This document shows positions 875 through 64,000 of a DNA stretch of 64,000 nucleotides, piece by piece (within the stretch, counting starts at the first letter, position 1; every line of letters begins with the position of its first letter). Both the position numbers and the translations under genes were made by a program. Source of the stretch: Amphiscolops sp. MND2022 (taxonomy: Eukaryota); the NCBI GenBank assembly GCA_964187785.1, contig OZ076420.1, positions 45,880,001-45,944,000 of the forward strand, in the 5' to 3' direction. The notes below the pieces were generated by a model, which saw only the letters and a program-made list of their open reading frames with translations, did not search any database and had not been told where the DNA came from.

Positions 875-997
875 AGGAGGAGTAGCGCTGTGTCTGAACC
901 CGCAAGGAAGACGCAACGGAGAGGCGCTCGTCAGATTCGCCAACTCCACTCATCGAGACATGGCCCTCATGCGGCACAAAAGACACATGGGATCCAG
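875..997 (+). CDS. ESRP: ESRP exon, second half of RRM1 (absent from the ORF track)
   Basis: ttgcag|A GGA GGA GTA GCG CTG TGT...GGA TCC AG|gttagt; [41 protein letters not shown]; 123 nt, phase 2-2. Confidence 0.93.
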
Positions 998-3900: not shown

Positions 3901-6900
3901 TTCAGTTCGAGACTGAAGATTTGGCGAAGGAGGCTCTCAAATTGCACAAGGCCAACATCAGAGACCGATACATTGAGCTCTTCAGGTCAACAGCTGCTGA
4001 AGTTGTCCAGGTCAGTTGAGGTGACCTTTTAGTTGACCTTTATGGGTCTAAAAGTTGACCCTGTATAGTCGACTGAATAGCTTCAGAAAATTGTTTTAAA
4101 ATGATTTATAATTCAATAATTGGATTTCTGAAAAGTGTTTTCGTTGAATTAGTTGTCGGTAAACACCAAGTTGACGTAAGTTTCATGGCATGATCCGCCT
4201 AACTTCATGGTATTTTTTGAGTGAATTTTTGAGGTCATTTTTTGAAATTGAAATTCTGAGCATGTTTCACAAAAATTGTTAACTCTAAAACTCAAAAAAT
4301 GTGAAACTTAGTGAGCAAAACATTCACAATACACATCTGCCACCGAATAAACTATCCTATTAAACGTTTAACTCCCACCCACGGTAACAGCCTTCTCCTT
4401 GGTATGTCTGAAACCATTATGCCCATTGGATCCATCATTTTTCTAGGTCATGAAGAAGTTCTCAAACCCCCCTCTCCTGCCCAACGGACCCCCCAACATG
4501 GGAAATGGGGCTCAGGTCGGGCCCAACCTGAATCCCTCTCATACCCTGGGGTCTATTAACCCCGCCATGGCAGCAGTAGCAGCCGCCAATGCCATGAATC
4601 TCTTCCCCATGATTGGCAACCTGCTACCCTCCACCAAAAGTTGTCTTCTATTACGTAATCTGCCCATTTCGGTCAAGGTAGAAGACATAATCTCTCTTCT
4701 TGGGGAGTTCGCAGAGTCTATCAGACCAGCTGGTATTCACATGGTTTTGAATCCTCACGTAAGTTTCACAAAAACTTAATTTACAAAATTTTACAAGTAA
4801 ATTTTGCTCTATTTTTTACTCAGTTTTCTTTTGGAAGCATCATTTGAATTGAAACATTTTCTTATGTCTGATTTCAAAAAAAAGGGGTTCGTATACTCAT
4901 ATTAACGTGGAACCCGGTCGGTAAAAAATCTTGACATTTTTAAATCAACTTGGTAAGTCTAAACTGGCTCAAGCAAAATTCGATCAAAAATCACGAAGTA
5001 ATGCAGAAACTCTCAAGCCAGAAAACAATCACAAAATAAATGATCGAGAGCTCAAAATGTATCAAATTGTATCAATATTGCATCAAAATGTCAAAATGTA
5101 TCAAATTATATCAATATTGTACCAAAATGTATCAAATTATGTCAATATTGCATCAAAATGTATCAAATTTTATCAAAATTGTATCAAAATGAATCAAATT
5201 ATATCAATATTGTATCAAATTATGTCAATATTGCATCAAAATGTATCAAATTATATCAAAATTGTATCAAAATGAATCAAATTATATCAATATTGTATCA
5301 AAATGTATGAAATTATATCAATATTGTATCAAATTATGTCAATATTGCATCAAAATGTATCAAATTATATCAAAATTGTATCAAAATGAATCAAATTATA
5401 TCAATATTGCATTAAATTGTATCAAATTACATCAATATGGATGAAATGTTGACATTCGATTGTTACAGGGCCGACCGAGTGGCGACTGTTTCATTCAGAT
5501 GCATTCGGATATCCGAGCTGCGGCTGCTGCCCTCGGCTGCAATGGCAAGACCCTGGGAGATCACAAAATCCAGGTCACGCAATGCTCGCCAGACGAGATG
5601 AACGCCTTCTTCGTCGAAGGTGCGTCTCTTGAAGTATTAGCCAATCAGATTTGTGCAACTGACCCCACCCTCTCTTCTGCTATCTTGGCTGCAAACCAGT
5701 CGGCTCAAACCCAACAAAACCACACCTTGTTGAATTTAAACATGGGGGGTGTTGGGTGTCTAAACGGTATGGGTGGTGCAAGTCTTAATGCAGCAACTTC
5801 TGCAATTCCCTCAAACCTAATTTCATCTTCTTCTATCCCTTTATCAACTGCAATTTTCCCCGTATCTCTTCCCTCTGAATTATCACCTCTCTCAGCGGCC
5901 GCAGCTCTGCAACAGGGCAACTCAGTGACATCATCACACCACCAAGTGACGTCACTGATGACGTCAGCAGGAGCTATGACGTCACAGCTCAACCTCGTCA
6001 CTCCTCCCTCTTCTCCCCCCAGAGCCCGCTGAATCTTGCTCAACCTGTTTCCATTGGTACGAAGGGTACTTCTTTTCTTCTGTCTCCTATTCAACTCTCC
6101 CAGCGTTTGGCATTGTTGAACAATTATTACACCTCAATAGTTGCAATACTTTATAAGTCGATGGTTGGAGGAAATAACATCCAAAATTACTTGTTGTAAT
6201 TTAAGTCCAATAAAAGTCCTCCATGAAAATAATTTGATAAGTAAAAAAACTATTGCAATTTTTGTCAAAAATTTCGTCAAATCCAACCACTGCACAGGTA
6301 ATGGCACGTCGCTCCGCCTTGCTTTTTTGCTGCATTGAGGGCACTAGAGTTATGTGACTTTGGCATATAACGATTGCCTTCTTGGGACCTTATTAACTGT
6401 AAACACTTCTGGACGTCTATACAATCTAGAAAAATTCAATGATTTCGCGAGGCGGAAATTTCGTCGCCAGAAATTTCGTCGTTAGAAATTTCGTCGTAGG
6501 AAATTTCGTCGTATTAGCAAATACAGAAATTTCGTCGTCAGAAATTTTGCCGTCGGAAATTTCGTCGTATTGATAAAAATTAACAGCGTTCGCGAAAAGA
6601 GATTATTTGAAATATTAAATTATTTAATTATTAAAATAATATCTTGACAAGTTTCAAGTTTCTTATCAAATCGCTTATTGAGCAATGGTACAATTTAGGC
6701 TTGTTCCGGAGATGATTTCTTGCTTCTTTTGTCAAAAAAAATATCAAAAATACCGGGAAAGTTTTGCTTCAAGTATCGAAACAGCTTCTTGTTGGGAGGG
6801 GGATAAGAAACAATGTATATCTGGGGTGGGAGGGATGAGGAACATGGTCCGAAACTTTTTCTGTTAAAACCATTACTAAAAGTCAATAATAGCAATAAGT

Positions 6901-9900
6901 GCACAATTATCGATAATTATTAAGATACTTATCAAGACTCGATAAATTATGAGACATCAATAATATTGGACAATTTCTAATAGCTTAGAAAAAATGCGAC
7001 GTTTTATAGAGCGTAATTTCCGACGACAAAATTTCCGACGACAAAATTTCCGACGACGAAATTTCTGGTAATCAATGATTTCATGTGGTATCGATGCTAA
7101 ATGATCGAAAGAAAGACCACGAAATATGACAAAATATAATCATTTGGGACAGTAAGCTCGTTCAAGAAGAGCTAAACGCCAAGACATTGCTAAAACTTTT
7201 TCAAATGTTCGAGATACCAAACGCTGCTTACCATTCTGGATCTTTTTTATCTTCGGTGATTGGGATTTTTTTCAGATTGGGGATTTTGGGATGCACTTTT
7301 CACGGGGAGTGTTTAATACTGCAGTTTTTAGCTTCAGTGGAATGGCAATCTCTTTTAGTGTTTATAAATTTTTCCCCATTTTTTTTCAAATCTTTTCAAT
7401 ATTTTCATCATTTCTTCACATGAGATAAAATACAAACATTTTTGTGTTAATATGTGTCTCCTAATTTCCAGAACTCAGATAGCCCCAGAACTAATTTCTT
7501 TCATATGAGATAAAATACAAACATTTTTGTGTTAATATGTGTCTCCTAATTTCCAGAACTCAGATAGCCGACTCTATTGGTTCATTCAAATCATTTATTG
7601 TTCCTTATATTCTCTTCTCCTAGATTCCAAGATCCCCTTCGGTCTCAAAACTTTAAAACTATTTAAATCTTTAATTAATTGTAAACACCCTTCGTTCCCA
7701 ACTGAATGAGACTCCCAATCTTTGATTTTACGTAATAATCAACTTTAATCCTATTTTGCGAATTTGAAAGTGCAAAAAGATTTTTTTGACCGAAGATGAA
7801 GATTCATCTTTCGAAGACTTTGTGCCATTATCTGCAAAGACTTTCTTGCTATCGAAAAATTTTCACATCAAAGTCTTATTTTCCAAAAAGGGATGGTATA
7901 TATGCGGAGCCTATAGGTATAAAAAGCCTATAAATGCGGAGCGTCGCGTTTAGGTATTATCTCTTCAATTTTGATAATCCGATGTCCGAATAAGATAAGA
8001 TATCTTGTTTTGTTTAAAAACGATGAGATTGAAATCATGTTTTAATTTGAGAGAAGGGACTCTCTTTGTTGTATCAAACCAAGTAAATAACACAGTTTTA
8101 CTCCAGTTTTACACCTACCTCCCCCCCAACAAATGGCGTCAAAAACCCTGCTAAAGAGCAATGTTCTTATCCAGGTACCATAGCACCGCCCAGTGTACCT
8201 CCAATCTTCCAAATTCCGGGTCTTTTCCCGAACTTGTTCCAATCCGGAGCACACGTAGGAGCGAACAACCCCTTACTGGCCCAGGCAGCAGCCTTGAGAA
8301 ACAACCAGAACTGCGCTACCAATGTCTCACCTCATTTGTTGCAGCCAGGGGGTCACGCCGCAGGTTGGAAAAAAAGTTACAAATTTAATCAAATAAGATT
8401 ACAAAGAATCAAATCAATTTTTGAAATTTTTGTCATCAATAGGAGCAGCATTGAAAAGAAAGAAAAGAAAAGTTAATTTTCCAGATGTCATGAATAGTAT
8501 AATTTATAATAAACACAAGGCAAAACATGAACATCCCAAACGGACGAGGAATGAGCTTAATCGCTCTTCAAGTCCTCGCCCTCAAGAACCAATTTTTAAC
8601 ACTTTCATTCATTATTTAAATTTTTGAAGTACGAATACACAATTCTCACTTAGAACAGAACACACTATAATTCAATTACATTATCTATTTCACATTGAGT
8701 TTTCTCGAGAGCTATAACAAGCATAAATGGCTTTGTACTTCAAAAGTTCTGTCCAAGACTTACTTGGGTATTTCCCAAAACATTTACACGCTGAATGCAT
8801 GAATTCTGAATGTTTTTACATTTTTTGCATGTTTTTTGCAAAAATCATTGATGTTTCAGGCGCAGCAGCAGCGGCGGCGGCAGCAGCAGCGGCCATGTAC
8901 ATTCCAAATGCAGCGGCTGCTCAGACATATCATCAGTTGACTCCCCCCGTGTCTCCCCATAACTCCCTTCTGTACGGACAGCCCAACTTCACCGCCGTCA
9001 AGATGAAGGGTCTTCCCACAGACGCCACTGTTCAAGACGTCATGACGTTTTTCAGCGATTACATAGTTAGTCAGATCGGCAAAATTATTTTATTGTTACT
9101 TACCAGAACTGCGCCACTTTTGAGTTGTCTGTTTCAAATATAGAAATAGAATCAAATACGAATTCAGAATCGAAATTTAGAGTCGAGTTAATTTTTTGAG
9201 TCGAGTTAATAAGCATTGAATTAAACAGAATCCTGAATGGTATATTTCATATAAATTTTTCGGAAAAGAAATTGATTGAATGATTTGGCCTTCCTCCTAT
9301 GGAGCGACCTCCACTGAAGTAGTCGTAGTGGCACGTCGCTTCAATTCCCACCTGCTTTTAGTGAATTTGATGCACGAGTTTTAAAAATGCTCCATTTTTG
9401 ATCTCGGAATATTTTAGAACTACACGAGCCTAAAGAATTTTGCAACCTTTTCAAATAACTCCACTCTACCTAACAATTCCACTTTTGGTGAGGTATCTAT
9501 TAATGAAGCGTATTTTAGTTATAGTGGAACGTCGTAGACCTCTGATTTGCTTTGAAGTGTTTTTCGGTACTATTAGACCGTTATTTTTGACCAAAAAAGG
9601 TCCTGTGATTACTGAATTTGATAAAATATGATTAAAAAATTAAATGGGACACCATTGACAAACTTCAGTGGGGTCACAAAAATTGATACGGGATTTTTGT
9701 ATCTTCTCATATCTGGCCCCAAAATAGGATGTTTTCATGAAGAACCACAGATAACTGGATCGTTTTTAACCAACCCTTTGTTTTCCAGATTCCGGAACAC
9801 GCCATTCAGCCAGTGATCAACCAACATGGAAAAGCTACCGGGGAGTGCTCTGTCATGTTCTGGTCCCTGGAAATTGCTAAGCAGGTTGTGGCCGAAAAGG

Positions 9901-9947
9901 ACAAATCCAGGATCCGAAACCACGTGATCGAATTGTCAGTCGTCTGA
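875..9947 (+). CDS. ESRP: ESRP/fusilli-family RNA-binding splicing regulator, 5'-truncated; exons 875-997, 3118-3265, 3804-4010, 4447-4758, 5469-5619 (or longer, see findings), 8175-8363, 8860-9065, 9789-9947
   Basis: The spliced translation gives ESRP-type qRRM motifs [21 protein letters not shown]...[17 protein letters not shown]...[12 protein letters not shown]...[13 protein letters not shown] and CLLLRNLP...GIHMVLNPH|[11 protein letters not shown]. Every junction is GT-AG with matching phase. The start of RRM1 and the N-terminus lie upstream of the window. Confidence 0.93.
3118..3265 (+). CDS. ESRP: ESRP exon, end of RRM1 and start of RRM2
   Basis: tacag|G TAC ATT GAG...GAC GTG|gtcagt; phase 2-0. 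Confidence 0.93.
3804..4010 (+). CDS. ESRP: ESRP exon, RRM2
   Basis: cctag|ATC GAG TTT...GTC CAG|gtcagt; 207 nt, phase 0-0. Confidence 0.93.
4447..4758 (+). CDS. ESRP: ESRP exon, linker and first half of RRM3
   Basis: ttctag|GTC ATG AAG...CCT CAC|gtaagt; 312 nt, phase 0-0. Confidence 0.92.
5053..5438. repeat. Intronic tandem array of degenerate 10-11-bp units (AATGTATCAAA / ATTATATCAAT / ATTGTATCAAA)
   Basis: About 35 consecutive related units are visible. The array generates the spurious ORFs 4931..5275 and 5241..5444. Confidence 0.92.
5469..5619 (+). CDS. ESRP: ESRP exon, second half of RRM3 (short form; the ORF stays open to 6032)
   Basis: ttacag|GGC CGA CCG AGT GGC GAC...GTC GAA G|gtgcgt; the phase-1 donor matches the phase-1 acceptor at 8175. 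Confidence 0.85.
6447..7071. mobile_element. Foldback/MITE-like element with inverted subterminal arrays of GAAATTTCGTCG(N)2-3
   Basis: About 7 units at 6455-6570 on +, inverted units (CGACGACAAAATTTC) at about 7016-7066; flanked by the 11-bp direct repeat TCAATGATTTC (6436-6446, 7072-7082). Confidence 0.7.
7421..7569. repeat. Local tandem duplication of 64 bp (period 85)
   Basis: tgagataaaatacaaacatt...gaactcagatagcc occurs at 7421-7484 and 7506-7569. Confidence 0.9.
8175..8363 (+). CDS. ESRP: ESRP exon, Pro/Gln/Ala-rich region; symmetric 189-nt exon
   Basis: atccag|GT ACC ATA GCA...GCC GCA G|gttgga; phase 1-1, open frame [15 protein letters not shown]... Confidence 0.75.
8860..9065 (+). 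CDS. ESRP: ESRP exon, poly-Ala, TPPVSP motif and first half of the C-terminal RRM
   Basis: tttcag|GC GCA GCA...TAC ATA|gttagt; [22 protein letters not shown] resembles the ESRP C-terminal RRM-like segment. Confidence 0.88.
9789..9947 (+). CDS. ESRP: ESRP terminal exon completing a fourth RRM (absent from the ORF track)
   Basis: ttccag|ATT CCG GAA...GTC GTC TGA; [52 protein letters not shown]; phase 0 matches the previous donor; the G-x-x-T-G-E-x-x-V-x-F pattern matches qRRMs. Confidence 0.88.
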   Translation: MPEHAIQPVINQHGKATGECSVMFWSLEIAKQVVAEKDKSRIRNHVIELSVV

Positions 9948-12900
9948 ACTTCCAAAAAGTCAACATTTAAAAATTCTTCAGTGAAATTTGTTCACACGCT
10001 CTCAACCTATTCGGTCACAAACAAAGGATGCAGTTTTGTTGCTTCCTTTTAAGGAAAATCTTATTAACGGAAATGTTCTTGACTATTGTTTTGTGGAAGG
10101 AGACAAACTCCAGAGTCTTTTAAGAAGTGACGAAATTCCGCCCGGTGCTAACTGCAGATATTACCAGTACGGTACGTTTCTGTCTTTACCAAACGAGTAA
10201 GCAGAGTTATACAAACAAACAAACAAAAGACTCAGACCAAAAATAAGCTTCTAAATTATACCCAATTACAATAATAACTTTAGTCTTATATAAAATTCCA
10301 ATAACAAATGTATTTGAATCAATTATAAATTTTATCCATTACCTTCTGTGGCATGCGTATTACCTTATACCTCTGAAATTGGTGGTAGTCAGTTTTGCCG
10401 AATTGTTATTTAGCCGAACTACGTTCGAGTGAACTTAGACAGGATTGAGTTCAAGAAAAAGTGAACAACGCAGTCGCTGAGCACTGATGTTGCTATGCTT
10501 CAGTTGACCGAACAATCCTATTGATAGTTTAGATTTTCATGTTTAATTGAAATTCAGCTCAAATAACAGTCGACATTTTGTCTTACCACCAATACAAACT
10601 CTCTTGCTAAGCACAGGGCTTCCTTTTTCTCTCAAGCTCCCAAACTGACCCAAATTTGTGCTTCCTCTAGCTTCATGAAAAATACATTTCTTATAAAGAT
10701 CTCTAAACATTGCTCTTTTTTGAAGTATTCTGTGTGCAAAACTAACTATTTTTTACTATTCTTGCAAAGATCATGAAAAATACTTCACTTCTTAGCATCT
10801 TGGAAGAAACATACAAAACTTCAATGATTTTTGAAGGAGCATGGATGATACTTTGAAAAAATGCATCTTTTTGAAAGAAGAGTATTTTTCTGACTCTAGG
10901 GTCCTTAGTCAGCGCAAGTCTGAGGGAGTTGAACTGTTTTCAAAGTAACTTTCCTCTTTTGTCATCATTGTGACGTCACCGGTGGCCTCAGGAATTCTAG
11001 CGCAAAGGCACCTCTCGAGTTTCCTTGTATCACTCATTCTCTGCATGTTGAAAGAGACTTACAAAAAAGCAAATCATTGGGACACATTCGCCCAAGAATT
11101 CTAGTGTACCTTTCTAACCCGGGTTGTTTGATTCGTTTTCCATTTTCAATTTCATTCATCTTAGCGTCTTTGTGGAAACTTGCTAGACGTTAATCAGTCA
11201 ATGACAATAAGTACCCCCCAAAGATTCCCAAACGCTGAAAAATTTTCTCAAAATGTAAAACTTTGCATTACTCGAAAATTTTGACGATATACCAGATGAA
11301 CTTCTTCTGTACATGTAGATGAAAAATGGTAATCTTACAATCCGGGTTTTGAATAAATGTATGTATCGCTTGCATGGATATTTAAAGGGTTCGTTTTCTG
11401 CTGAAAAATTGCTGTGTACGTAGTATACGTAGAAGGAATATTTTATTTGCGCCCAATTTGCTTAACACTCTTTGACCTTTTTTTTCAAACCTTGACCTCA
11501 AAGTTAAACGCGGGGTTTTTGATGTCACGATTCAGACGGAGAAAAGTTTGAAGCAAATTTTAGCCCAAATTTCTGTTATTATGATCAAAGTTTCAAACTT
11601 TCAAAATTCCAATTAATATTTTTTCACTCGGTTTGATATTTGATCATTCTTTTTCTCCGTTCAGGTGGGAATTTGTGATCCCTAATTTGTCATCAACCAT
11701 CGACTCCTTTTCAACAAGCAAAAACCTGTCCCTAAACCACCCCCACCCGCGCCTAGCATACGTACCAATTCTTTCAATTGCCATAAGTGCCTTCGTTTTT
11801 ATGCAAGAAGCGCACATTGCTTAGAAATTCTTTGTGCAATAATAATTTTTATTTCATGTGCATTTCAGTGCTTGATCAATGTATTGTTAAATAATGAACA
11901 CTTCATCAGCCCCTAAATTTTTAACTATCAATCTTCAACTTAAATTGCAAACTGTAATTTCTAAATTTCCTTCAAATTATTTCCTCAGAGCTATCATTTC
12001 TCATTGAAATGATCCTTACGACGACTCCAGATAACTTAATCGTGCTAGATTTATCTATAATTCAAGGAATACTTCCTGACTTTTATTCGAAACTTTTCTG
12101 AACTTTATTGATGCTTCTTATGTATTTGCTCCCATTTTTTTCCTAACAATTATACTTTGCGTTCGACTCAGAGCACATTATGAGAATAAATATATATATC
12201 GCTATAAATAAAGCAATTCTTTTTTATTATTTTTTTAATTTTCCGAGAAATAAAGTTTGAGATGAGAAGGTCAATTGTAAATGAAGTTTTCAATCCCTCA
12301 TGGTTCCGGAAGTATGAGAAGTACGACGATTTTCTGCCCTGTAAGGTAGACTAGTTATCTTTAACAAAATATTTTCAGAGTCTCAATAGTCATCCGTTAA
12401 AAACCAAAAAAAAGTTTCCTACCGGACATTGAAAAACTAAGAACATGAAAGATACCAAGTGTAATGTTCCGTTAAGAAGCTCAGAAACCCCCCGTCAACA
12501 GGGGAAATATTTCTCACTAAGATCCATTCACCATTTGAGTCTGCTGGAAAATTTTCCTTAATGACTTCAAGCCCACAAGCCTTTTTCTCACAAAACATGG
12601 AAAGTTCCAGGAGCTTGATTGGAAATAATTTGTAGTTCGGGAAAGTTTTTCAACTTTGTTAGCGTCACGGGAAAATTAAAATTGATAAAATCATAGCTAC
12701 ATTCAGATGTAAATCTTTGGCACGTTAAAACTTTCAAAACAGCATGGATTTGAAGCGCAATCAAATTTAAAATGATGCATAAACTTTCATGCAGCTTGAT
12801 AAAAGTCAATTAAACGAACGGAAACATTAGCAGATAGAAGTTTCGGTCGGAGTTTCATAAAATCAGGATAAATTTGCTTGTCAACGTACACGAACATATA

Positions 12901-12969
12901 AAACTTCAAGCAGTTTCAACCAAGGTCAATATTTGAACAAGAAACAAACCGACACTGGGTTGTTTTTAA

Positions 12970-13485
12970 ACAGAACAAGACGGGAACGTCTAAAGTCGGC
13001 GGTATATCTAAGACACAAAAAGCGCAGATTTGAAATAGGAGTAGGACGTTTTCACGAAAAATTCATGTTTTCGAACCTCCGCCTCCTCCTTACAAAAATT
13101 CAATATAGTTCGGATACAACGTCAAAAGTTCGGATATAGCGCTTAACTCCGGATATCACGAGAGGGGACTTCAATAAGATTAAAGGGGGACCCTTTGAAG
13201 ACAAAAAATTTTCCAAAAAAAGTCTCACAGCGCCGAAAAAAATTGAAAGAGGACCTTTTAGACTTGTCTGGTTTTGTATGTTACATTTAAAAAGTAAAAA
13301 CTGAAAGGGGGACACTTTGCGATAACTTAGATGCGTTTCCCACGTATTCGTTCGTTTAGTTGAACAAACTGAACAAAAATTTTGTCGCTTCGAGTCTGGC
13401 TGAAAAAACGAGTACCTGTAATAGTCGGGCTCTATCATCAATAAAAGTGCCGACTAAAAAGCACTAATAAAACAGTGACTAGCGT
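12970..13485. repeat. Copy of an abundant dispersed repeat family; related fragments at about 1425-1500, 1800-2245, 13735-13790, 14700-15130, 29440-29860, 50100-50830, 57875-58245
   Basis: Shared motifs GGAACGTCTGAAGTCGGCG..ATATCTAAG, GGGGGACCCTTT, AAAAAAGTCTCACARTGCCGAAAAA and a terminal AGTCGG...CCGACTAAAAA stem-loop recur in these intervals. Confidence 0.75.
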
Positions 13486-15647
13486 TTTTCTGGAGTCTCA
13501 TTCGAACGTCTTTTTTATGTTCAACTTTTTAGGTAGTGTTTTCCCGGGTAACTTACAGAGTTACGACGTACGCAAAAGTCATCCTGACTCCTGATCTCAA
13601 AGGAAGTTTTACAAAAATATGAACAAAGGACCTCTCCAATTTTTTTGTTGTTTAGTTAGGAAAAATCCTTTCTTAGCCTGCAGAATTCCAGTCTTCATCT
13701 CTATTTAGCTTTGTGGATTTTGCAGACGTGAACAAGACTGGAACGTCTGAAGTCGGCGCCCTGTATGAAGCTCGAAAAGAACAAAATCTTATTAAGATTC
13801 TCAGGGTGGGTTTTGGGGCAATTGATGATTTTTCCGAGCATTTATGTAGGTGAATCCATACATGGATCCACCGACCCTGCTACTTTTCTATGCATCCAAA
13901 CACACTTTTTGTAGAACCCTTCTGAGGAAAAATTCTTAAGGGACCTTTTTTGAAAAGCTGCTGTAAGTGCTTTGTGATATGACACCAATTCATACTCGTT
14001 TCCAGTTACATCACTTCTAAAACGAACTCATGCCAACACTACAGCGGTACTTCAAATTCAATTATTGATGTTTTCAAGTCGTGTTAAACCTCTAGAGGCA
14101 ACAGAAACTGGTTGCCAGTTCCGTTCGAAATTCTCTATTTCATCTATATTCTGGATAGGTTCTTTGATTGTTTTTAACGCTTCGTCATGTTGAGGATCCG
14201 ACTGTTTTTGTTGTCATTCTGTGGTAAGGGTTTCAAAGAGGGTGCGCAAAAATACCAGACTCGATATATTACGTTTCATTTAATTAGGGCGACCATCAAT
14301 GATCGAAATTGGGTTTTGTTTATCTGCACTTTTTCTAAGGGTAACTTCATTCCCGTTTGGAACTATTCATGCTTAAAATTTTGACCTTATTCGCTAGATA
14401 TGGAGTACACCTTCTGAAGGAAAATGTTTCGAGCTACTTCGTAGGTCAGAATGGTGTAAGCATTCAAAAACAACTAAGCTCGATTTCCAGTAAGCTTGTT
14501 TTTAGGAGGCATCTGTAAATTCATGTATGAAAAGTTCCTCAAATTCACCCCAAAGTTGTCAAAACTATTTCCAATTTTTGACACTTCTGATGAAACTATG
14601 TGCAATAATATAAAAAAACCCGGATTGCTCAACTTTCCTAAATGTGCAAAGGACCTAGATTCAAGCTTTTACGATTCTCTGAGTGCCAAAAATTACCTAA
14701 AGAAATACGCCTGAGACTAGGAAACCACTTTTTGCCCAACAGGAATCACAAAAAATCCAATTTTTTGATTGTTTTCCGCTGAAGTTCTCTGATGGCGAAA
14801 CGAAGTACTTTTGCCAAGCGGAAGTCAGGTATGAAAGCAAGGGGTACTCTTTGACCAAAAGAAAGTTTCGGAAAGTCGCACAGAGTCGAAAAACTGAAAT
14901 GAGGTAATTTCCACAATCAAGAAGAAACCTCGCCGGTTCCATATGATCAACGGTAACAAAGAAGTCACCCTCAAGACTCGGGAAACCTATTTCTTTTACA
15001 GAAAAACCTCAAAAATTGAAAATAACGAAAAATGGTTTTCGAAATTTATTTTCAAAAAAGTTATTGAAAATGTTCTCTTTTCTCGGTGAGTGGCATAGTG
15101 CCGAAAAGACGAAAAGTGGCCAGCTATCGCAGAAATTATAAGTTAGGGGTTTCCTTTAAAATTGGCTAAAATGAATCAACGCTTTCCTTTTTTCGAACTT
15201 CTTCGAATATCTCGCTGCTCAGCGGGCGTCTTGTTTGATTCTCGCTCAAAATGCACCAATAAACTGCTGTAATTTTCTTCAGTTCCCTGCACAAAAGTTC
15301 TCCTACAGTAATTTTTAGAATTGGACGAAAGTATACTTAATGAGAGTATCGGACTGATCTCCAAAGTCATATCATGCAATTGATCTAGTTGATATACACC
15401 AAAAGTGATATAATGTATCTCTCGATTAACGTTTTCTCGGAACCATTACGAATTGTTTGAAATTACCATTGTGTCTTAGGTGAAAGTTCAGACGCTTCAC
15501 AAAACATTGCAAGCCAAGCCACTGATGAAGCAAACGAAGTTCCAAGTTCAATATCGATGCCAGAGATGCTTACAGAAGCAAGTTGTATCCTGAAATCTAA
15601 TGCTATCTTCAGAAGAAGGGGCATCGATAAGCAACTGAATTTACACT

Positions 15648-17190
15648 TGTCGCAGGCTACCGCCTGCGATGGCCTACTTTATCAAGTCACCCCGGAAGAC
15701 GACATTAATATTCCAGGACCAGGAGTCCTACCGATCTACTGAAACTCTCAAAACTTACATAACATATTAGTGAGTATTGCTATCTTACTAAACAAATGTT
15801 TTTTCACGTTGTTATGGCGCTTATTTTGATAAAACATGCAATTTTTCTAAACACTCTGACCTAAGGTCAGTTTGACCGCAACCATTTACTTTTATTATTA
15901 TTTTATATACTGATATGTAAAAACGTTGATGAACTATTTTGTCTATTGTGAACCAATCCTTTCATACAAATATGCAATTAATTGCTTGTTGCAGTTTAGA
16001 AATGTAAATTAGAAATCAGTTGAATAAAGCAACGAACTGGTAAAAGTAAAGGAAACGCGTTCAACTTGTACAGCGCTGCCGTCAAGTTGACGCGTTGTCC
16101 CAATTACTTTTAACCAATCAAATTGCGCCAATAGTATCGTGCTAAAGTCACGCGGACGTTAGGTCCAATTTGTTATTGAAAGCCGTATAATACTCTCAGA
16201 AGCATGAAATATTACAGTTTGCATGTATTCATTAATATCTGTTTTGTTGTTGCTTCCATTTATATATTAGAGGACAAGTGACGTAATGTATCAGTTCACC
16301 CTAGTTTCTATTTATAGCCAATATTATGTCATAATTAGGTTGTTGCTATTTTTGATGATGACATCATTCATATTGTTACTCTATGACGTTCAAAATACTG
16401 AGTGTCATGGTGATAAAAGTATATAAACGACGGGTCCGATTTTGTAAATTCAATTCAGTACTGTTGCAACGATACACATACGCACTGTGAAAGTTAGACG
16501 AACTGTCCAATTTACTCTTAAAACGCAAATCTCTCATTATATAGTCTTCAACTAGAAAGCAGAAAGCCAGAGAAAAGCGCTCAAGACAATCTGACGTAAT
16601 GTCCGACATTGAAAACTTAGATGTAATGTTGGGAAATTACCAGGAAGATGATCAAGTTAGAGATGAAGATATTAGGAAAACTGATTTTGACTTAGAGTCA
16701 AGGAGACCTCAGAGAGAAACTAATTCAATTAGTGGAAACTTTAGGTCAATATTGAATATTATTGCGAGTGAGAATAGTGAAATTACAGTTGAAACCAGTA
16801 GAGCAATAAATTCAGAAATTTCTTCGCAAATGTCTAGGAAATTAGAAGAAATGAGATCAGATCTTAATTCGCATATTCTGAATGCAATTGACTCTGCAAT
16901 TGAAGAAAAGGTGATTCCCAGCATCAGGATAGCATTGGAAAGTCAAAATTCAACAAAAAATACAAATACGGACCTTCGGTCAGATGGACCTCATCCGAGT
17001 ACTTTTGGTCAAGTACGTCCGCAAAGGGACCTTAGGTCAGTTGGACCTCAGCAACAAATTGCTGGAAAAGCGTCCCAGGATGCTAAGAAAGACTTCCCTA
17101 GGTTAGTAACGACGAGTAGTAACCAAATAAATCATCAAAGAGAGAATTCAGTAGATTCTTTTGGGAGTGATGATGAATCTGGTTACGACA
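15648..17190 (+). repeat. 5' LTR (1543 bp)
   Basis: Near-identical to 25186-26727; roughly 35-40 differences counted by eye (about 2-3%). Confidence 0.95.
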
Positions 17191-54700: not shown

Positions 54701-56143
54701 ATGTTAATCGAAATAAGCAAGATTGTTGGTAATTTCGGTATTTTCACACATTTTGGTGAATTCAGTCTACCATATATAATTATCAATTACGTTTTCGTCA
54801 CCTTTTTTTAATGGCGTAAATGAGAACGGCGTGGTGGTAGTTTTAATTACCTTCACTCATTAGTCAATTATGCAATAATCTTTCAATGACTGTCTCAGCT
54901 ATTAATGCTTAATCAAAGTTACTTTCACACTATGAAATTCAAATTAGGAGATTATGAACTAGGAGATTTAGGTCTAGGATATTTTAACTTAGGAGATTTT
55001 AACTTAAGAGATTTGGACCTGATACCTTTCTGAGTATCTCAACGTCTTAGCGTATCTTTCACTTTTTTCTTGTCATCATTTGTTGCATGGGAAAACGGGA
55101 TATTATCTAACGGGATAATGTCTAAACCAATCCGATCACTCAAATTGACATGGATGAGGCATTGGTCGTGACATGTTGTTGTTACCCTGTGATTGGTCCA
55201 ATCACCTGATTGGCTTGGCCACAGTTCTTAAACGAAGTTTTGTGGGGTTGATTGCTTGAGTCGTTCCATGATGTAATCATGTCAGTCCTGATTAAAAATG
55301 CTTCTTCACTCGCATTGGACGAAATTGTTCAATATTTTCAAAATAGATGGAAAATCATTTTGGTATCTATGTTGATTCAGGCAGTCTGACGCAATGGCAA
55401 ATTTCAAAAAAAACAGTAATATAATCGAGAAAGTTTTGATTATAGAATTGGGAACATTTCAATCTTCAAACAAATTTAGTTCAAAAATGATAGAATTCGT
55501 TGAACAGAAACAATAAAAACTAAATCGCCGGACATTTTTTGACAAAATACCGATTGGAGAGTATACGAAGCTGTGAAGGCCATTGAAATGAAATGGAGGA
55601 AAGATTTTCTAACTAGCTCATCGTTCATTAATGATGTTTTTCTGGGCGATTTGGATATTTGCAATTTTGGACCAACTCTTGATTTCGCTAACATCTGAAA
55701 GACAAAAGTGTTCTTCTATGAAAGCACAATCGCAACGTGATATTCATTCAATGTTATGACAATTCTAACACGTCGCCTAAAAATCCGTTCATTCAGGTTA
55801 TCCGTCTTTCTCTTTTTTGTTCACGTTCGTTCCAATTTTTGCAGAAGCGCGTCATCCCGTGTGGGCACAAAGTGCCAACGTGCAAGGAAATCAAAAAGTA
55901 CAGGATACAGATGATGATGACGATGATGATGATCACAAGGGTCACAAAGGTCACAAGGGTCACAAAGGTCATGACCGCGGAAAACACCTCGGTCATCAAC
56001 ATGACGACGACGATGAAAATGATGATGATCCCGAAGATCAAGAGGATGAAGATTTCGATTATGATGACGACGAACAAACCCCTAGTAGCTCGGAAACACC
56101 ATTGGGAAAAGCGATTGCTTTTTTGACAGAAGCACTTTCCTAA
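51709..56143 (+). CDS. Predicted secreted Asp/His-rich protein with (HKG)4 repeats, 144 aa; exons 51709-51766, 52877-52954, 55845-56143
   Basis: aaaATG AGA AGT...GCA AAT G|gtaagt (signal peptide MRSLSLICVVFLAVVLVANA); tttcag|CC CAC...ATG C|gtgagt; tttttgcag|AA GCG...TAA. All junctions are phase 1 and total 435 nt; AATAAA near 56175 and 56238. Extra internal exons cannot be excluded. Confidence 0.72.
53562..55026. mobile_element. Foldback-like element with inverted arrays of ~15-bp AAATCTCCTAAGTT units
   Basis: Array at about 53573-53665 is inverted relative to the array at about 54945-55020; flanks TTTCTAAG / TTTCTGAG (7/8 match, possible TSD). Confidence 0.6.
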
Positions 56144-58725
56144 ATTGGAAGTCAAAAACCATTCTGAGGCTACAATAAAGACAAAAAATTTGGATGCCCA
56201 AATTTCATTCAGCGCTTGTAAATACTGTGTGATGTCCAATAAAACTAATATCAAATATCAGTCTTTGCAAAATGGGAACAGTTTGTGATAACAGAATCTA
56301 TTGTTGTTCAGTTTTGTTCACAAGAAAAATAATGCCCCTGAAACCGGTTTGAGATCTTTTGGAACACGCGTATATTTGGCAAGCTTCGAGGGGAAAAGAC
56401 GTCATGAATTTGTCGTCAAAACTCGTTTTGATGATTCCAAATACAACAAACAACTTGAAAAAAAGTTGGCTCCATTATTTTCGTGCAACTTCGTAAGCGC
56501 TTTCTGATCAAAATAACAATACTATGACAAAGCTCCAATCGGCGCTTCACTTGAAGTTCGAAATTCTAATAAAAATTTTTAGCGGTGTAAATCTCAACAG
56601 TGAAATTTTTTGGTTTTCGGAAGAGCTTTTGAAAAACTGAAACAAAAGCAAAAGAATACCTTTTGGCGAAATCAATAAGACACCCGCTGAACAGGGGACT
56701 ACTATACGAAGACAAATTTTTGAAGCTGAATAAACTACAAACTTGGAAAAGAAGTTTGAAAATCGTTTTTGTTCTTTCAATCTTTTAATATTAAATTTAA
56801 CAATCTGCTTAATTTTCTGACTATGAGTAGGCTAAGTAGCTGTTTTGTTGTTGAACTTTGGGAACTCTTGGGCCAGCGTTCTCGGAAATTTCAATGAACT
56901 GAAAATTGGAATTGTATTTGAATATCATATCTATGAACTATTAAAGTTTTCACTGGCGCAAATCAGAAATGGTTTCCAGAATCTTAGCATTGGAATTCAA
57001 CAGAGACAAACAAGGAATGTAAGTTTTAATATTTGGAATTTTTCGGAAAAAAAGTATATGCTAGACTCACGAGCAATAATACTGATGAACGCATTACGTA
57101 AATGGGGTGTATTACCTTCGAATAAAATGATATGTGAAAAGGATGATAAGCAGTTTGAAAAGTGGTATCACCAAACATCGGATCTCTATATTTTTGGAAA
57201 TGGGGACCTTACGAAGCTTATCTACAAGTAACCGAAAACCCTGGGGATGTTTTACTTTATCACAGGATCCAATTTTTCAAAAAAGGATCATTCATTTTAT
57301 TGCTCTACCACACACACAAAAACTATTATTGTTGAATAATAAGATTCCCTCTTGAAAAGCTAGTGCTTTTAGGGGTCCTTTTCAGGGGCTTCTTTGTTAA
57401 TTCGTTTTGTTTAATTCATTGTCTGTCATTTATGCCCTCTGATAAAATGAATATTATTTCTCTTATCAAAAAATATTCAAAAATTGTAAATCAAATGCAT
57501 AAAACAGCTGAAATTTTCTGATTGAACCGCCAATAAGCAGTTCTGCATTTTTGAGGTGGTTCCCAGTCAGAAACAATCTGCCCATGCCAAGGTACGCGCC
57601 ATATTTGCAGTCAAGTATTCAAGCAATCGGCTTGAAAATGTGTTATCGGAGTGACTAGCTTAACGTCACCGATGATTGCTCGTTGTTGCTTTTTGCAAGT
57701 GTTTTTTTGTCCGCCAAAATTTTGTTTTGTAAATGCACTCTGCTAAAATAGGGTTGAGGAATTTCCTGAAGGCCCAACAGTTGAAGTAAAATTGAAATGG
57801 CAACTTTCGACATTTTTTGTTTGCAATTTACTCAATATTTTATCATCTCATTTTTACATCCCAAAATTGTTGAAAACAAGCCGGAACCGGCCCAAGTCGG
57901 CGTCATATCTAAGGCTCAAAAATAGCAAAAGGACTTCAAAGTGTCAAATTATTCTCTTCTACAGTACCTGAAAAACCCAAAAGGTTGAACCTCTTTGGGA
58001 TTTTTCAAAATCCATTCTGTGGTAAAACATCAAAAGATTGAAGGGGAACCCTTTGAGGAATTTTTTTTCGAAAAAAATTCTCACAATGCCGAAAAACTGA
58101 AAGGGGGACCCTTTAGTCTCTCCCGGTATTGTCTGTTACGCGGAAAGAGGGAAAACCTTTTTGATCAGTTCGTGTGGATTGAAAAAATGTCACTATAATA
58201 GTGGCGTTTCACTTCATGAAGCGCCGACTAAAAAGCAGTCAAAAGTTTCCTTTCTTGTATAAGAATTGCCCAGCACGACAAAAGTTGAGTGAAATTCATA
58301 ATTTTTGGGAGAGAGTTTTCATTCTAAAAAGTGGATAGTTAATTGTTCAAAAGATGATCTGTGATTGTTTCAACTGATGAAAACTTTAACAAATTGAACA
58401 AAAATTGCAAGCAAATTGTCAAAAAATGAGAAATTCTGGAACGTTCGGCTTTTTTTCGGGTATTTTTCATACCAACTAGAAGTCCAATTTCTAGGGGAAC
58501 TGGATGGTTGGTTTTTTCGAAAAAAGATAATGTATTAAATATCACAGAGCTGAAAAAAGGTGCAATTTGGCCTCATGCAGTTTGAGCAGAAAAGTTGAAC
58601 AGTCGAAAAGTGGTCGTTCGGATGATATTTGGATCGTCGGCAGCAAAACAGTCTTAAAAGTGGATAATTAAGCGCCGGCTTTGTCATCTCGACAAAAACT
58701 AGTTGTTGGCACAAGATCAATACGT

Positions 58726-58932
58726 TGTTGCGCGGGAGAGCAAAACTTTGTTAAGAAAGAAGAATATATTTTTGAAAGCACTGCTTTTTGTTGAGTGAGT
58801 GAAAAAGAGTGATTGAAGCATGAACAATAATAAGAACAAGCGGTAAAGCATTTAGTTAACCATGAATGAAATATGACTAATTTTAAAACAACATAGCATG
58901 AAATGATGGAAATATGTTTTAGGCTTTCAACA
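58726..58932 (-). repeat. Putative 3' LTR (207 bp)
   Basis: TGTTG/CAACA inverted termini; no second copy in the window. Confidence 0.5.
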
Positions 58933-58973
58933 TCCAGGACACCTTGAATTTATTCAATATTTTAAGATTCAAT

Positions 58974-59850
58974 ATGACTGAATTTGTTGATCGTGATGCC
59001 AATCGTTCAGCTTCTGGACGCAGTAGACGAGTTCTTGAGTACTCTTTCGTGAATCCCAGAGAAAATAGGAGAAGTTCAATTGTCGCCCACTTGCCGTCTT
59101 TCAAGGATCTTGTTACAATTCTATCCAATCCAGAGCGGAAGTTCAGCTGTGTTCCAGTGAGAACCATTGAGGAAGTATGGGATAACCCTTTGGAAGTGGC
59201 TGTGATTCAGACACCAGTAGTAGAATTGAGTGACACTGATCTGACCTATTTGAAAGAACTTTCTTTTGATGATATTCCTTCATCATGGGGAGGTCTGAAT
59301 TTTAATAACTGTGACGAGAGCCCTGCCCGTGTAAAATCGGGTGTAAAAATTCAGTTCCCTTTCACTGTCGATCCTCGTTTGGATGCATCAGAGCTAATAT
59401 TCGAACGTCTAGGAGACTTGATATTCGTGGAGAAGTCAAGCTCCCGAGCTTTTCACCATGATCTGGAGGAAGAGGGCCATTCATTTGTCACACATCTCTG
59501 GGAGAAAACTGTGGATGTTCTGTGCTTTGTCAAGTTTGGGTCAAGAACTCGATCGAGCAGCAAGAGTAAGAAGAACAGCACTCTCTGGGACTATTCGCCT
59601 ATTAGACAGTCTTAAGCCAACCAGAGCTAAGCAGATTTTTTGGACTATCGTTGAGCCGGGTTGCACTATTTATTTTCCGTATGGTTTTCTGCATTCAGTG
59701 TGGACTGAAGTAGAGCAAGCCAATTGTAGTTGTATTTGCACTGTGGAGCGGAACATATCAGATGAATGGTGTAATCGTCAAAGAAAATTGGCTTCAGACA
59801 GGACTGCTGTGGGCAAGAGCCGTAAAGGGTATAAAAGCAGTACAGAATAA
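58974..59850 (+). CDS. Intronless JmjC-domain (2-oxoglutarate/Fe(II) dioxygenase) protein, about 290 aa, one frameshift near 59490
   Basis: Joined translation ...SSRAFHHDLEEEGHSFV(T)/HISGRKLWMF...TIVEPGCTIYFPYGFLHSVWT gives the JmjC H-x-D, G-x-K-x-W and PG...P.G..H.V motifs; AATAAA at 59881 and 59934. Confidence 0.88.
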
Positions 59851-60223
59851 CGGTAAGCATGAAACAAGATTGTTAATTTTAATAAATCGTAACATTGGAA
59901 TGCAGCGAAGTGTCAGCTAGGGTTCATTCGATCAATAAAATCGAATAACATGGAGTAAAATCATAAAATTTTGATTTCAGACTGCTTATTTTCGACTAAA
60001 ATGATGTAAAATTCTCTGTTCAATAGATGATACGTCGAAATGCACAATATTAAAGGACTTCAATCCATATCCATGCTGAAGAGGAGTGTATTTACAAGCG
60101 AATGAAGGGGTAAATAGTACTGAAAGGTAAAATGGGTCACTTAGGGCAACTTTTTGATGTAGTTGATTGTAGTGACCTTTGAATTTATTATTATTTTTTG
60201 ATAATCATTTTGAATAAGACTTT

Positions 60224-63200
60224 CTAAAGATTCGGTGAAGTAGTAGTGTCGTATCTATTGATAACAGGATCCAGTGGGAGCTTTCGTAACTTCGCTACTG
60301 GTCTGACGCAATTCCCTGTAATTGTCTTTAACTCTGAAACTCTTGAAATACCATCATTACCTTCGAAAAGTTTGACAACTCGACCAGTTTTCCACATAAG
60401 TGGTGGCTCATTGTTTTCAGCGATTAAAACCAAGTCACCTATAGCAAGCTGTGGACCGTTAATGAACCATTTTTTGCGGACTTGGAGTTCAGTTAGATAA
60501 TCGCGCTTCCACGATTTCCAAAAATCTTGATACATCTTTTGGAGTAATTTGAATCGCTGATTGCTATTGATGAATATATCTTCTTGTGGTAGCGAAATCA
60601 TGGAATCACCTATCAGAAAGTGCCCAGGAGTAAGAGGTGAGAAATCATTAGGGTCATTGGACATTGGGAACAATGGTCTTGAGTTAAGAATTGCTTCTAT
60701 TTGGTTGATGAAAGTCAGCATTTCCTCATAATTCAATCTCTGGACTCCAACAACACGTCTCAAATGGCGCTTCATGCTCTTAACTCCTGCCTCCCACACT
60801 CCTCCAAAGTGAGGTGCACGTGGAGGAATTGTTACCCACTCAATTCCTTGCTGGCTCAAATACATTCTCAACGATTCACTTTGGTTAGATTTACCAAGGA
60901 TAGCTTGTATCAGATCGTTTCTTGCACCGATAAAGTTGCTGCCGTTGTCACTAATGATCTTCTTGGGTTTTCCTCGACGAGCAACAAAACGTTTCAGAGC
61001 CATAATGCAATCTTGCTTGTTCAAACTTGATACCATTTCGAAGTGAATGGCCTTTGTTGCCAGACAAACGAATACTGCTATATAAACTTTCTGGATTTTA
61101 GCATCTTTAATCTTGATTGGACCTGCGAAGTCTAATCCAGTCTGAGAAAATGGTCGTGCTGGGGTAACTCTTTCTGATGGAAGGTCTGCCATCATCTGTT
61201 CGATCGGCTGAGATTGAAATCGATAGCATTTCACACAGTTACGCAATCTTTTGTTTACAGTTTTTCTTCCATTTATGATCCAAAACTGCTGTCGTATCGT
61301 GTTTAGTGTGAGTTGGCCCCCACCATGAAGCGTAGTTTCATGAAAATGATCGATGATCAGATTTGTGAGTGGACTTTCCGTCGGCAGAAGATAAGGGAAC
61401 TTTTTGTCTTCAACATAAGCAGACTGACTTAGTCTGCCACCAACTCGAACAAGGTCATGTTCAGGATCATAAAAAGGTGAAAGATTCTTGAGGGGCGATT
61501 TCTTATTTAGATCGTTGTTTTTTAATGCAGCGATTTCTTCATATAGGTGTGAATGCTGTTCTTGACGAACTAATTTAATCAGTGCATGTTTCCTGATTGT
61601 GACATCGGTCAATACTGATGTATCTTTGCTCACTTTCTGCTTACACTTGAAAATGAATTTGAGTACGTAACTGGTTATCCGAATTAGTTTATCGAGATTG
61701 CTAAAGCGTGTGATTGGGAGTATATCATCAGTTTCTGGAAACGTAACCCGACTTGCGTGTGACACGAGTTGATCAATCTTGCTGGTCACTTTTTGCGATG
61801 CCTTTCTTTTTTCCAACGTTTCTGCCTTGCTTGGTAAATGAATTTTCGGCCAACAGTCAGATTCTAGAGATAACCAAATCGGGCCCTGCCACCACTGCGT
61901 GGAGTTTATGAGTGTTTTGACTGAAACACCTCTTGAAGCTAGATCGGCTGGATTATCATTTGTCGAGCAGTGGTTCCAGCAGTCTCTTTTTAGTACTTCT
62001 TGAATTTGAGCCACTCTATTAGCAACGAACGTGTTCCATGTTCGTGGAATCTGTGCAAGCCATTGGAGAACAATCGTTGAATCAGTCCAGGCGTGAAGAG
62101 TCATCTGGGCATTGATTACGTCAAAATGTGACTTTGTGAAATTCAGCAATTGAGCTCCTAAGTGTGCACCACAAAGCTCTAAACGAGGCAATGAAACAAC
62201 TTTACCAGGTGCAACTTTTGTTTTTGACGTCAGGAGATGTACTGTCACAAATCCTAACTTATCCTTTGCTCGACTGTAAATAACTGTTGCATATGCTTTT
62301 CTGGCGCATCACAGAACATATGAAGCTGAAGTTCGATAAGTTGATTTTTGACAATCGGTCGCGGCAATTGAATTGTGTGGATTTCCGAAAGTTCATTGAA
62401 CTGACACTCGAAATCAGTCGCAATTTCTGGAGGCACGTTGTCGTCCCATTTCGTGCCATGTAACCAAATTCGTTGAATTAGAATTTTGAACTTGATTATT
62501 ACTGGTGACAGGAAACCATGTGGGTCAAATAATTTAGGGACAACATCGTTCTTTTTGTAAGATTTTGAGGTTTTTCTAAATCTGTAGTGAAATAGAAAAT
62601 ATTTTGTTTGGTTTCCACGACATCCCCAGTGCCTTCACTTTATAATTTTCTGAGAAAATTTGTACTTCATCAGCCGATTCTCTCAGTTCTGCAGGTATTT
62701 CACGAATCAAATTTGGATTATTTGACACCCATTTTCGCAGAGGAAAACCGTACTCATTAAGTACTTCACAAAGCTTGTGAACTAGAATTCTAGCCTCATT
62801 TGTAGAATTACTGCCTCCGAAAAAGTCATCAACATAGAAACCATGCTTTATGTGATACTTGATTTCTTCATCAGATGTTTTGTCTGCAATGTCAGCTAGG
62901 CATCGTGTAGAATGAAATGCAGACGATGCGATTCCATACGTAACACGAGTCATGCGCAATATCTGGAGTTTCTGACTTTCATCGTCTCGCCAAAGTATCC
63001 GATGAAAATTTCGATCAGTTTCATCCAATGCTACTTGTCTGTACATTTTCGCGATATCGGCTGATAGTGCAATTGGGTATATTCTGAACCTCATTAAAAT
63101 GGCGAACAAGTCATCCTGTATCGTTGGACCAACCATGAGAGCATCATTTAGAGAAATACCACTAGAAGTTTTTACAGATCCGTCAAAAACTACTCTCATT

Positions 63201-63994
63201 TTTGTCGTAGTCGAATCCTCTTTGAAGACACAATGATGTGGTAAATAGAAGCTTTGATCATCAGGTACTTCTAATGCCGCCTCAGGAACCACCTCCATAT
63301 GCTGCATGTTGATAAACTCATCAATGAATGCTTTGTATCCTTTTTTAAATTCTGGTTTTGCATTTAGGCGATTTTCCAAATGATTAAATCTTCTCTTTGC
63401 TTGACTCAAACTTTCTCCTAGTTTCATTGAGGACTTGAAAGGAAGCTTCACAACAAAACGGTCATTCTCTATTCTTGTATTTTGACAGAAATGGTCATTA
63501 CAGTCACTTTCTTCCCCTGTCCACATTGAACGTTGCGGCAATTCTTCAATTTCCCAGAATTGTTGGAGTTGAAAGTCAACTGATTCAACCGATGCACGAA
63601 AAGCCTGAGCATTACCTGAGTCTTTAGAGGGCGCTGTCCCTGACACTGTCCATCCGAAAGCCGTTTGGCGAGCAAACAAGTTTCCTGTGATTTGCTTTCG
63701 CTCATGTCCAACTATTTTTTCATAAATGTCCATTCCGAGGATGATGTCTATTTTACCCGACTTGTAAAAGTTTGGATCGGAAAATTCAATCTCATATGAT
63801 TGAATATTTGCAGGTACTTTGATTGACTTTGAAGGTAACAAACTAGTGAGTTTTGGGAGGATGAATGCAGAAACTTGATGCACTCTTGACATTCTGTCTA
63901 CTAGCTGTAAGTGGGATGTCCCATGATCAACAACTGTTGAATTTCCGCTAATGCCAGTAACACTTATTTTAGACTTTCTACGGGGTAAAGTCAA
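60224..63994 (-). pseudogene. BEL/Pao pol (end of protease, RT, RNase H, integrase) with several frameshifts at about 62250-62600
   Basis: ADIAKMYRQV, FYVDD, MFCDA, KTKVAP...LPRLEL, WTDS, NPADLASRG, GLDFAGP, SDNGSNF, GGVWEAGVK. Confidence 0.95.
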
Positions 63995-64000
63995 TTTCTG

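Follow-up and report, generated by a model that had tools for sequence, protein, structure and literature searches.

Long terminal repeat (LTR) retrotransposons are usually thought to carry just gag, pol and sometimes env. Among transposons that encode more, the Arabidopsis VANDAL (Mutator-like) DNA transposons carry VANC, an accessory protein proposed to counter the epigenetic silencing of its own family. Plant LTR retrotransposons are well known to have antisense additional open reading frames (aORFs) in the interval from pol to the 3' LTR; none of these is clearly similar to known proteins and their function is unknown (PMC7264820), and a survey of annelid LTR elements makes the same statement on extra open reading frames (ORFs) (PMC8220671). 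A promoter upstream of the aORF was described for Grande, and antisense promoters are cited in HTLV, micropia and IAP (PMC7264820). Here we analysed a 64,000-nt stretch of the genome of Amphiscolops sp. MND2022 (GCA_964187785.1, contig OZ076420.1, 45,880,001-45,944,000), called the window below, to which all coordinates refer; positions past 64000 are given as window-equivalent and come from 4 kb of flanking genome beyond the window end (region L031). A 6.9-kb BEL/Pao LTR retrotransposon on the minus strand has its 3' internal region in the window, and this element carries an antisense gene for a JmjC-like protein.

The JmjC-like gene is antisense, lies between pol and the 3' LTR and is present in all or most copies of its family, as is the case for the plant aORF-3R group (Grande gene23, RIRE2, Retand, PvRetro13), with which it also shares an ancient presence within lineages. 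The plant genes reside in Ty3/gypsy elements, whereas the present one is found in animal BEL/Pao elements and in a distant gypsy-type branch, and its product has a recognisable predicted enzyme fold with an intact active site. HTLV-1 likewise has an antisense coding gene, HBZ, at its 3' end, which starts beside the 3' LTR (PMC7264820). In contrast, HTLV-1 is a vertebrate retrovirus and HBZ is a regulator of the bZIP type, and the LTR antisense promoter is only presumed in our case. Antisense aORFs as such are known; what is new here is an aORF-3R in animal BEL/Pao elements with an identifiable enzymatic fold. Full-text literature searches, with most subscription journals outside their coverage, found no description of a transposon-encoded JmjC protein.

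An earlier note on this DNA had taken the 207-bp repeat at one end of the locus (Table 1) for the 3' LTR. Its partner, the 5' LTR, was found at window-equivalent 65439-65645, with 2 mismatches in 207 positions and TG..CA ends. With the 3' LTR at 58726-58932, and not between 59850 and 60224, the JmjC-like gene is inside the element as claimed, in antisense orientation and flanked by the pol stop (60224) on one side and the 3' LTR on the other. Both outer sides of the LTR pair are flanked by ACGT, and this 4-bp target-site duplication replaces the TACGT that had been suggested. A primer-binding site starting with TGG was found 5 nt inside the 5' LTR. The BEL/Pao domain set is present between the LTRs, including gag (DUF1759, on the minus strand beyond the window end), aspartyl protease, Peptidase_A17, reverse transcriptase (RT), H2C2, rve and DUF5641. 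The LTRs, target-site duplication, primer-binding site and BEL-specific domains together identify the host element as BEL/Pao. The minus-strand BEL pol does end at 60224, in an ORF with Integrase_H2C2, rve and DUF5641. Other details were also borne out: the ATG, put at about 40 nt from the LTR edge, is 41 nt away from it, AATAAA signals follow the stop codon, and the catalytic motifs lie at the positions that had been given for them. The gag-pol of the window copy is broken into at least three ORFs. With the JmjC-like gene frameshifted and gag-pol split, the window copy is young but dead. A 1080-bp tandem duplication was also seen across the 5' boundary of the element (L031 6807-7886 and 7887-8966, window-equivalent 64807-66966). 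The duplicated unit covers the 5' part of gag, the primer-binding site, the 5' LTR and 241 bp of flanking DNA, and because it includes the 5' LTR, a third LTR copy is found at window-equivalent 66519-66725.

When the genome was searched at the DNA level, about 12 near-full-length siblings of the region 58726-60230 were found at 88-98% identity, each beginning at the LTR edge, together with further, more divergent copies at about 80%. Many of these siblings have a partner LTR 6.5-9 kb away. The JmjC-like gene was found in every near-full-length member of the window family, and the same LTR abuts the ORF in each sibling. The LTR pairs of five copies are 97.6-99.5% identical, indicating that the family is young, and two other copies have clean 5-bp target-site duplications (GACCA and TTGTC). 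In the window copy, a frameshift between the H-H-D and G-R-K-L-W motifs (about 59,480-59,500) leaves the ORF in two pieces, 58944/58974-59615 and 59458-59850. Contigs from DNA runs of the same organism showed the stretch to be repeated, with other copies varying in length at this site. An uninterrupted ORF of 292 codons is present in 6 of the siblings, and the gene is intronless in the window's own family. The intronless ORF of about 290 aa described in the earlier note is thus right for the family but not for the copy in which it was described. In an ENA assembly (L039, 9753-13204), the LTR and JmjC match of a 97%-identical copy ends 127 bp past the JmjC stop; from there the sequence runs on into a minus-strand ORF of 701 aa, which is different from BEL pol, and three tandem 207-aa RVT_1 ORFs are located upstream.

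The family extends far beyond these copies. In this 1.07-Gb genome, at least 139 six-frame protein matches were obtained from 315 first-look candidates; they form many groups which are 32-48% identical to the query, many of them with open frames. Searching 1.84 billion representative proteins exhaustively with a profile gave 42 clusters at E<=1e-3. In 14 of the 14 divergent loci that were fetched (L060-L073), the gene is convergent (tail-to-tail) with the C-terminus of BEL pol, at a distance of 100-430 bp. The pol of the host BEL lineages is down to 40-65% identical, and the JmjC-like gene is still present and often intact. At one of these loci (L072 359-3773; G000 C6:1781000-1785000), a plus-strand pol, the antisense JmjC-like ORF, a stretch of about 380 bp and a plus-strand gag ORF follow one another, which looks like two tandem elements sharing one LTR.

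Outside this genome, homologues were found in Tara Oceans and in other ENA/Logan assemblies. On a Tara scaffold (L076), 486 bp separate the gene from a convergent BEL pol, which is 40-42% identical to that of the window; the same convergent layout with BEL pol was found in L078, with 562 bp in between. The JmjC-like gene is therefore carried by all near-full-length siblings, by 14 divergent BEL lineages and by two outside contigs, in line with the expectation that other family members would have it. Both contigs have a terminal direct repeat (851 bp in L076, 1018 bp in L078) that takes in all or some of the gene, similar to the arrangement in L072. The ends of these repeats are not canonical, and they may be either a long LTR covering the gene or tandem copies sharing an LTR. 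L078 has two short frames (116 and 157 codons) in the same reading frame, and the 45-nt GT..AG stretch between them (6967-7011) would join them cleanly; some lineages probably have a short intron in the gene.

A distant branch of the family is located in an element of another type. In an ENA assembly (L075), a 12.3-kb element (4244-16526) is bounded by 358-bp terminal repeats with 99.2% identity. Its pol matches RT_RNaseH/RT_RNaseH_2, without BEL-specific domains or similarity to BEL pol, and the distant family member P0037 lies antisense between two minus-strand ORFs of no Pfam match. This branch is therefore carried antisense in a Ty3/gypsy-type element. The two minus-strand ORFs are 434 aa (9368-10672) and 771 aa (4821-7136) in length; a further ORF of the element, 236 aa long, gave a weak dUTPase match, and an array of 132/196-bp tandem repeats is located upstream at 1-3590.

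Other homologues were found in different surroundings. P0002, from Tara Oceans metagenomes (L032-L038), is 48% identical to the window family. It is part of a repeated block about 2.0 kb long, the copies of which are 96-98% identical and have different flanks; in L033 a CA/GA microsatellite follows downstream. No pol was found within 830 bp of this block and no terminal repeats were seen, and P0002 may be a non-autonomous or stand-alone form. No clear element borders were seen in the neighbourhoods of P0030, P0044 and P0012 (L074, L079 and L080), and L074 showed no terminal repeats within 8 kb on either side of P0030. Beside this distant member, L074 has a 1228-aa ORF (11374-15060) that combines C2H2/BED zinc fingers with a domain of Endonuclease VII and may belong to another mobile element.

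The descent of the gene was compared with that of its carrier. Distances in the JmjC core track the pol distances across ten lineages (Mantel Spearman r 0.84, 1/20,000 permutations), a pattern consistent with a single ancient acquisition, after which the gene descended vertically together with the element. The JmjC-like gene evolves faster than pol. For L007 and L010, the deepest within-family pair, the ratio of nonsynonymous to synonymous divergence (dN/dS, omega) was 0.42, with a binomial p of 0.008 against neutrality, and omega was 0.27 between L007 and a 48%-identical metagenome homologue. Between sub-families, dN was about 0.5-0.58 and dS was saturated. As judged from these comparisons, the gene is inherited with the element through the deep diversification of BEL, under purifying selection.

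The identity of the protein was examined with an alignment of 29 natural, unaltered sequences, which are only 20-50% identical and have a mean column identity of 24%. D163 and K179 are invariant, and H161, W181, P236 and H241 are conserved in at least 90% of the sequences. The metal triad His-x-Asp...His and the 2-oxoglutarate lysine of JmjC oxygenases are thus found both in this alignment and in the motif match to PHF8. When the 29-sequence profile was compared with the PDB sequences, PHF8 was the best match (E 4.6e-7), followed by KDM7 and PHF2, with the catalytic motifs aligned. These were the only matches below 1e-3, and NO66, JMJD7 and JMJD6 were found at E 0.1-1. Searches of Pfam and PDB with single sequences were marginal (JmjC_2, E 0.0015-0.016; NO66, E 0.011). 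In a Pfam scan of the 29 members, Cupin_8, JmjC and JmjC_2 were matched below the curated cut-offs, and the Cupin_8 match of one member reached E 5e-8.

An AlphaFold2 model built from the same alignment had a predicted local distance difference test (pLDDT) score of 84.6 and a predicted template modelling (pTM) score of 0.80, with a single domain at residues 40-280 approximately; a model from a 5-sequence alignment (pLDDT 34) was discarded in its favour. The top Foldseek and VIA matches of the model were all JmjC proteins, namely PHF2 (Z 14.9), PHF8 and KDM2A (14.6), ceKDM7A (14.5), and FIH and JMJD5 (13.7). It superposed on JmjC structures with a root mean square deviation of about 4 A over about 224 residues. 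Searches of AlphaFold DB clusters, viral models and a language-model atlas returned only JmjC/cupin proteins, none above 16% identity, and the language-model neighbours were JmjC/Cupin_8 clusters. The assignment to JmjC, which had been made from motifs, is supported by the PHF8/KDM7/PHF2 profile match, the Z scores of the model and the conserved catalytic residues. The protein is predicted to adopt the JmjC double-stranded beta-helix fold with an intact metal triad and 2-oxoglutarate lysine, and the family is a remote JmjC subfamily that previously had no name.

Its closest JmjC subgroup may be KDM2/KDM7, judging by the profile matches below 1e-3 and by the top Z scores, but FIH and JMJD5 are only about 1 Z unit behind. 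The likeness to KDM7/PHF8/PHF2 and KDM2 does not extend to sequence identity, which is only 10-13%, or to domain architecture. The element protein has no PHD, CXXC, F-box or JHD, consists of about 290 aa as a whole, is encoded by a retrotransposon and stays below the Pfam cut-offs. Since KDM7/PHF8/PHF2 are the only significant sequence relatives and also the top fold matches, histone methyl-lysine is the best-supported guess for the substrate.

Based on these results, we propose that the protein may act as an Fe(II)/2-oxoglutarate oxygenase to the benefit of the element. The JmjC-like gene would form its own antisense transcription unit, with a promoter in or adjoining the 3' LTR and polyadenylation in the spacer before pol. 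The likeliest substrate would be histone methyl-lysine, as for the KDM2/KDM7/PHF8 enzymes. Expressed from the antisense LTR promoter, the enzyme would erase repressive marks such as H3K9me2, H3K27me2 and H4K20me1 on copies of the element, and the outcome would be a counter-defence against heterochromatin and piRNA-guided silencing. The parts of this explanation are not equally firm. We are highly confident that this is a real, selected, element-borne JmjC gene. That the protein is catalytically active is a prediction from its conserved residues which we consider probable. A role as histone demethylase with anti-silencing function is a tentative prediction, and it is no more than possible that a clade of animal LTR retrotransposons (BEL/Pao, with the distant Ty3/gypsy-type branch) encodes its own histone lysine demethylase as a putative counter-defence. 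Taken as a whole, an element-borne and active JmjC oxygenase with histone methyl-lysine as its likeliest substrate has, in our judgement, about an even chance of being right.

Several observations weigh against this explanation. No checked member reached the Pfam gathering score (JmjC, 22.6 bits with a cut-off of 24; Cupin_8, 24.5 with 27.4; JmjC_2, 18.7 with 22). Pfam detected no other domain in any member; reader modules (PHD, chromo, Tudor) and the helical JHD domain are both missing. Lysine demethylases and hydroxylases are not told apart by the fold ranking (Z 13.7 for FIH and JMJD5 versus 14.9). Omega was 0.3-1.2 inside young sub-families and 0.3-0.9 among young siblings; such values are to be expected when much of the divergence in the former, and part of it in the latter, is decay that followed insertion. 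By eye, none of the 150 best DUF5641 matches (from 6214 first-look candidates) was near a listed JmjC match, and the gene seems to mark only a minority of the BEL elements of this genome (315 versus 6214 first-look candidates). As for transcription, the sequencing runs matching the stretch were four, all of them contigs of whole-genome DNA and none of RNA. No TATA-like motif was found within 300 bp upstream of the ATG when L007 was scanned. The two AATAAA signals lie in a spacer of 67% A+T and are weak evidence for polyadenylation, and the 41-nt distance between ATG and LTR is what points to a putative antisense promoter in or beside the 3' LTR.

The protein could also be a hydroxylase rather than a demethylase, acting on a non-histone target important for replication. 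This could be a host translation, splicing or restriction factor, the Gag or integrase of the element itself, or RNA, for instance the tRNA primer. The relevant comparators are FIH, JMJD5, JMJD6, NO66 and TYW5. TYW5, like FIH and JMJD5, is within 1-2 Z units of the best demethylase matches, JMJD5 and FIH are among the top Foldseek matches, NO66 and JmjC_2 were the sole matches of single sequences, and a bare catalytic domain without chromatin reader modules would suit such an enzyme. The profile search speaks for the demethylases instead, with only KDM7/PHF8/PHF2 below 1e-3 and NO66, JMJD7 and JMJD6 far above it. We regard a hydroxylase on protein or RNA as a doubtful but serious possibility, about equally likely as a histone demethylase.

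Explanations in which the protein itself does not matter fit the data less well. The antisense RNA might be what is selected, for tuning copy number or feeding small RNAs, with the protein incidental; antisense transcripts were suggested as regulators of LTR retrotransposons in a review of plant aORFs (PMC7264820). Constraint is seen at the amino-acid level, however, as the catalytic residues are kept across sequences of 20-50% identity, dN is far under the saturated dS and the model is confidently folded, all of which makes this explanation improbable. It is very improbable that the gene is a captured host fragment decaying as a functionless passenger. Roughly half of the siblings, and the window copy itself, are indeed broken, and omega within families can be near 1, as such a relic would show. 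But the gene is kept, often intact, in BEL lineages with strongly diverged pol, its divergence tracks that of pol, its catalytic residues are retained, and the AlphaFold DB fold clusters contain no close relative (identity at most 16%); a recent passenger was rejected. The probability is negligible that the ORF arose by chance or is a normal host gene or a retrocopy lying outside the element. The gene is multi-copy and inserted with target-site duplications, not a single-copy syntenic host gene, and the LTR pair, the target-site duplications, the multi-copy state and the homologues with conserved active sites rule out these possibilities.

An element-borne oxygenase would differ from the other accessory proteins and mobile enzymes with which it can be compared. 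VANC is similar in being a transposon-encoded accessory protein, but it comes from a DNA transposon and binds DNA in a sequence-specific manner instead of being an oxygenase, and the anti-silencing role is only presumed for the JmjC-like protein. Viral Fe(II)/2-oxoglutarate oxygenases (JmjC/cupin proteins of giant viruses, AlkB of plant RNA viruses) likewise have mobile carriers and are remote fold neighbours. In contrast to the present family, they belong to other clades (8-16% identity), lie in other genomic contexts and none of them is in a retroelement. The present family is an extra ORF with a clear predicted enzyme fold and intact active site, which divergent element lineages have long retained, and it seems most closely related to enzymes removing the histone marks by which transposons are silenced. 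If the enzyme acted on chromatin, the retroelement would have a direct enzymatic means of countering host epigenetic silencing, and this would provide a testable system for the conflict between transposons and host chromatin in animals. If it were a hydroxylase, it would still be a new type of retroelement accessory enzyme.

The features of the element in the window are collected in Table 1.

Table 1. Coordinates of the BEL/Pao element and its JmjC-like gene in the window.
Feature	Position	Strand	Remarks
Target-site duplication ACGT, left copy	58722-58725		Right copy at window-equivalent 65646-65649, after the 5' LTR
3' LTR, 207 bp	58726-58932	-	TGTTG...CAACA on the plus strand; partner LTR 99.0% identical
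JmjC-like accessory gene, antisense to gag-pol	58974-59850	+	Frame pieces 58974-59615 and 59458-59850; stop codon 59848-59850
H-H-D motif	59454-59462	+	His161 and Asp163, predicted Fe(II) ligands; aligns with PHF8 FHID
G-R-K-L-W motif	59500-59514	+	Lys179 (59506-59508), predicted 2-oxoglutarate-binding lysine; aligns with PHF8 GEK
Distal His241, in Y-F-P-Y-G-F-L-H-S-V	59692-59694	+	Predicted third Fe(II) ligand; aligns with PHF8 GWIHAV
Spacer, 373 bp, separating the two convergent stop codons	59851-60223		AATAAA on the plus strand at 59881 and 59934
pol C-terminal ORF	60224-62248	-	Tail of the Peptidase_A17 model, Integrase_H2C2, rve, DUF5641
pol N-terminal part	62576-64000	-	Aspartyl protease and RT; extends past the window end

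Elsewhere in the window, overlapping ORFs were observed at 55737-56254, including a frame with poly-Asp and (His-Lys-Gly)4 at 55817-56143.

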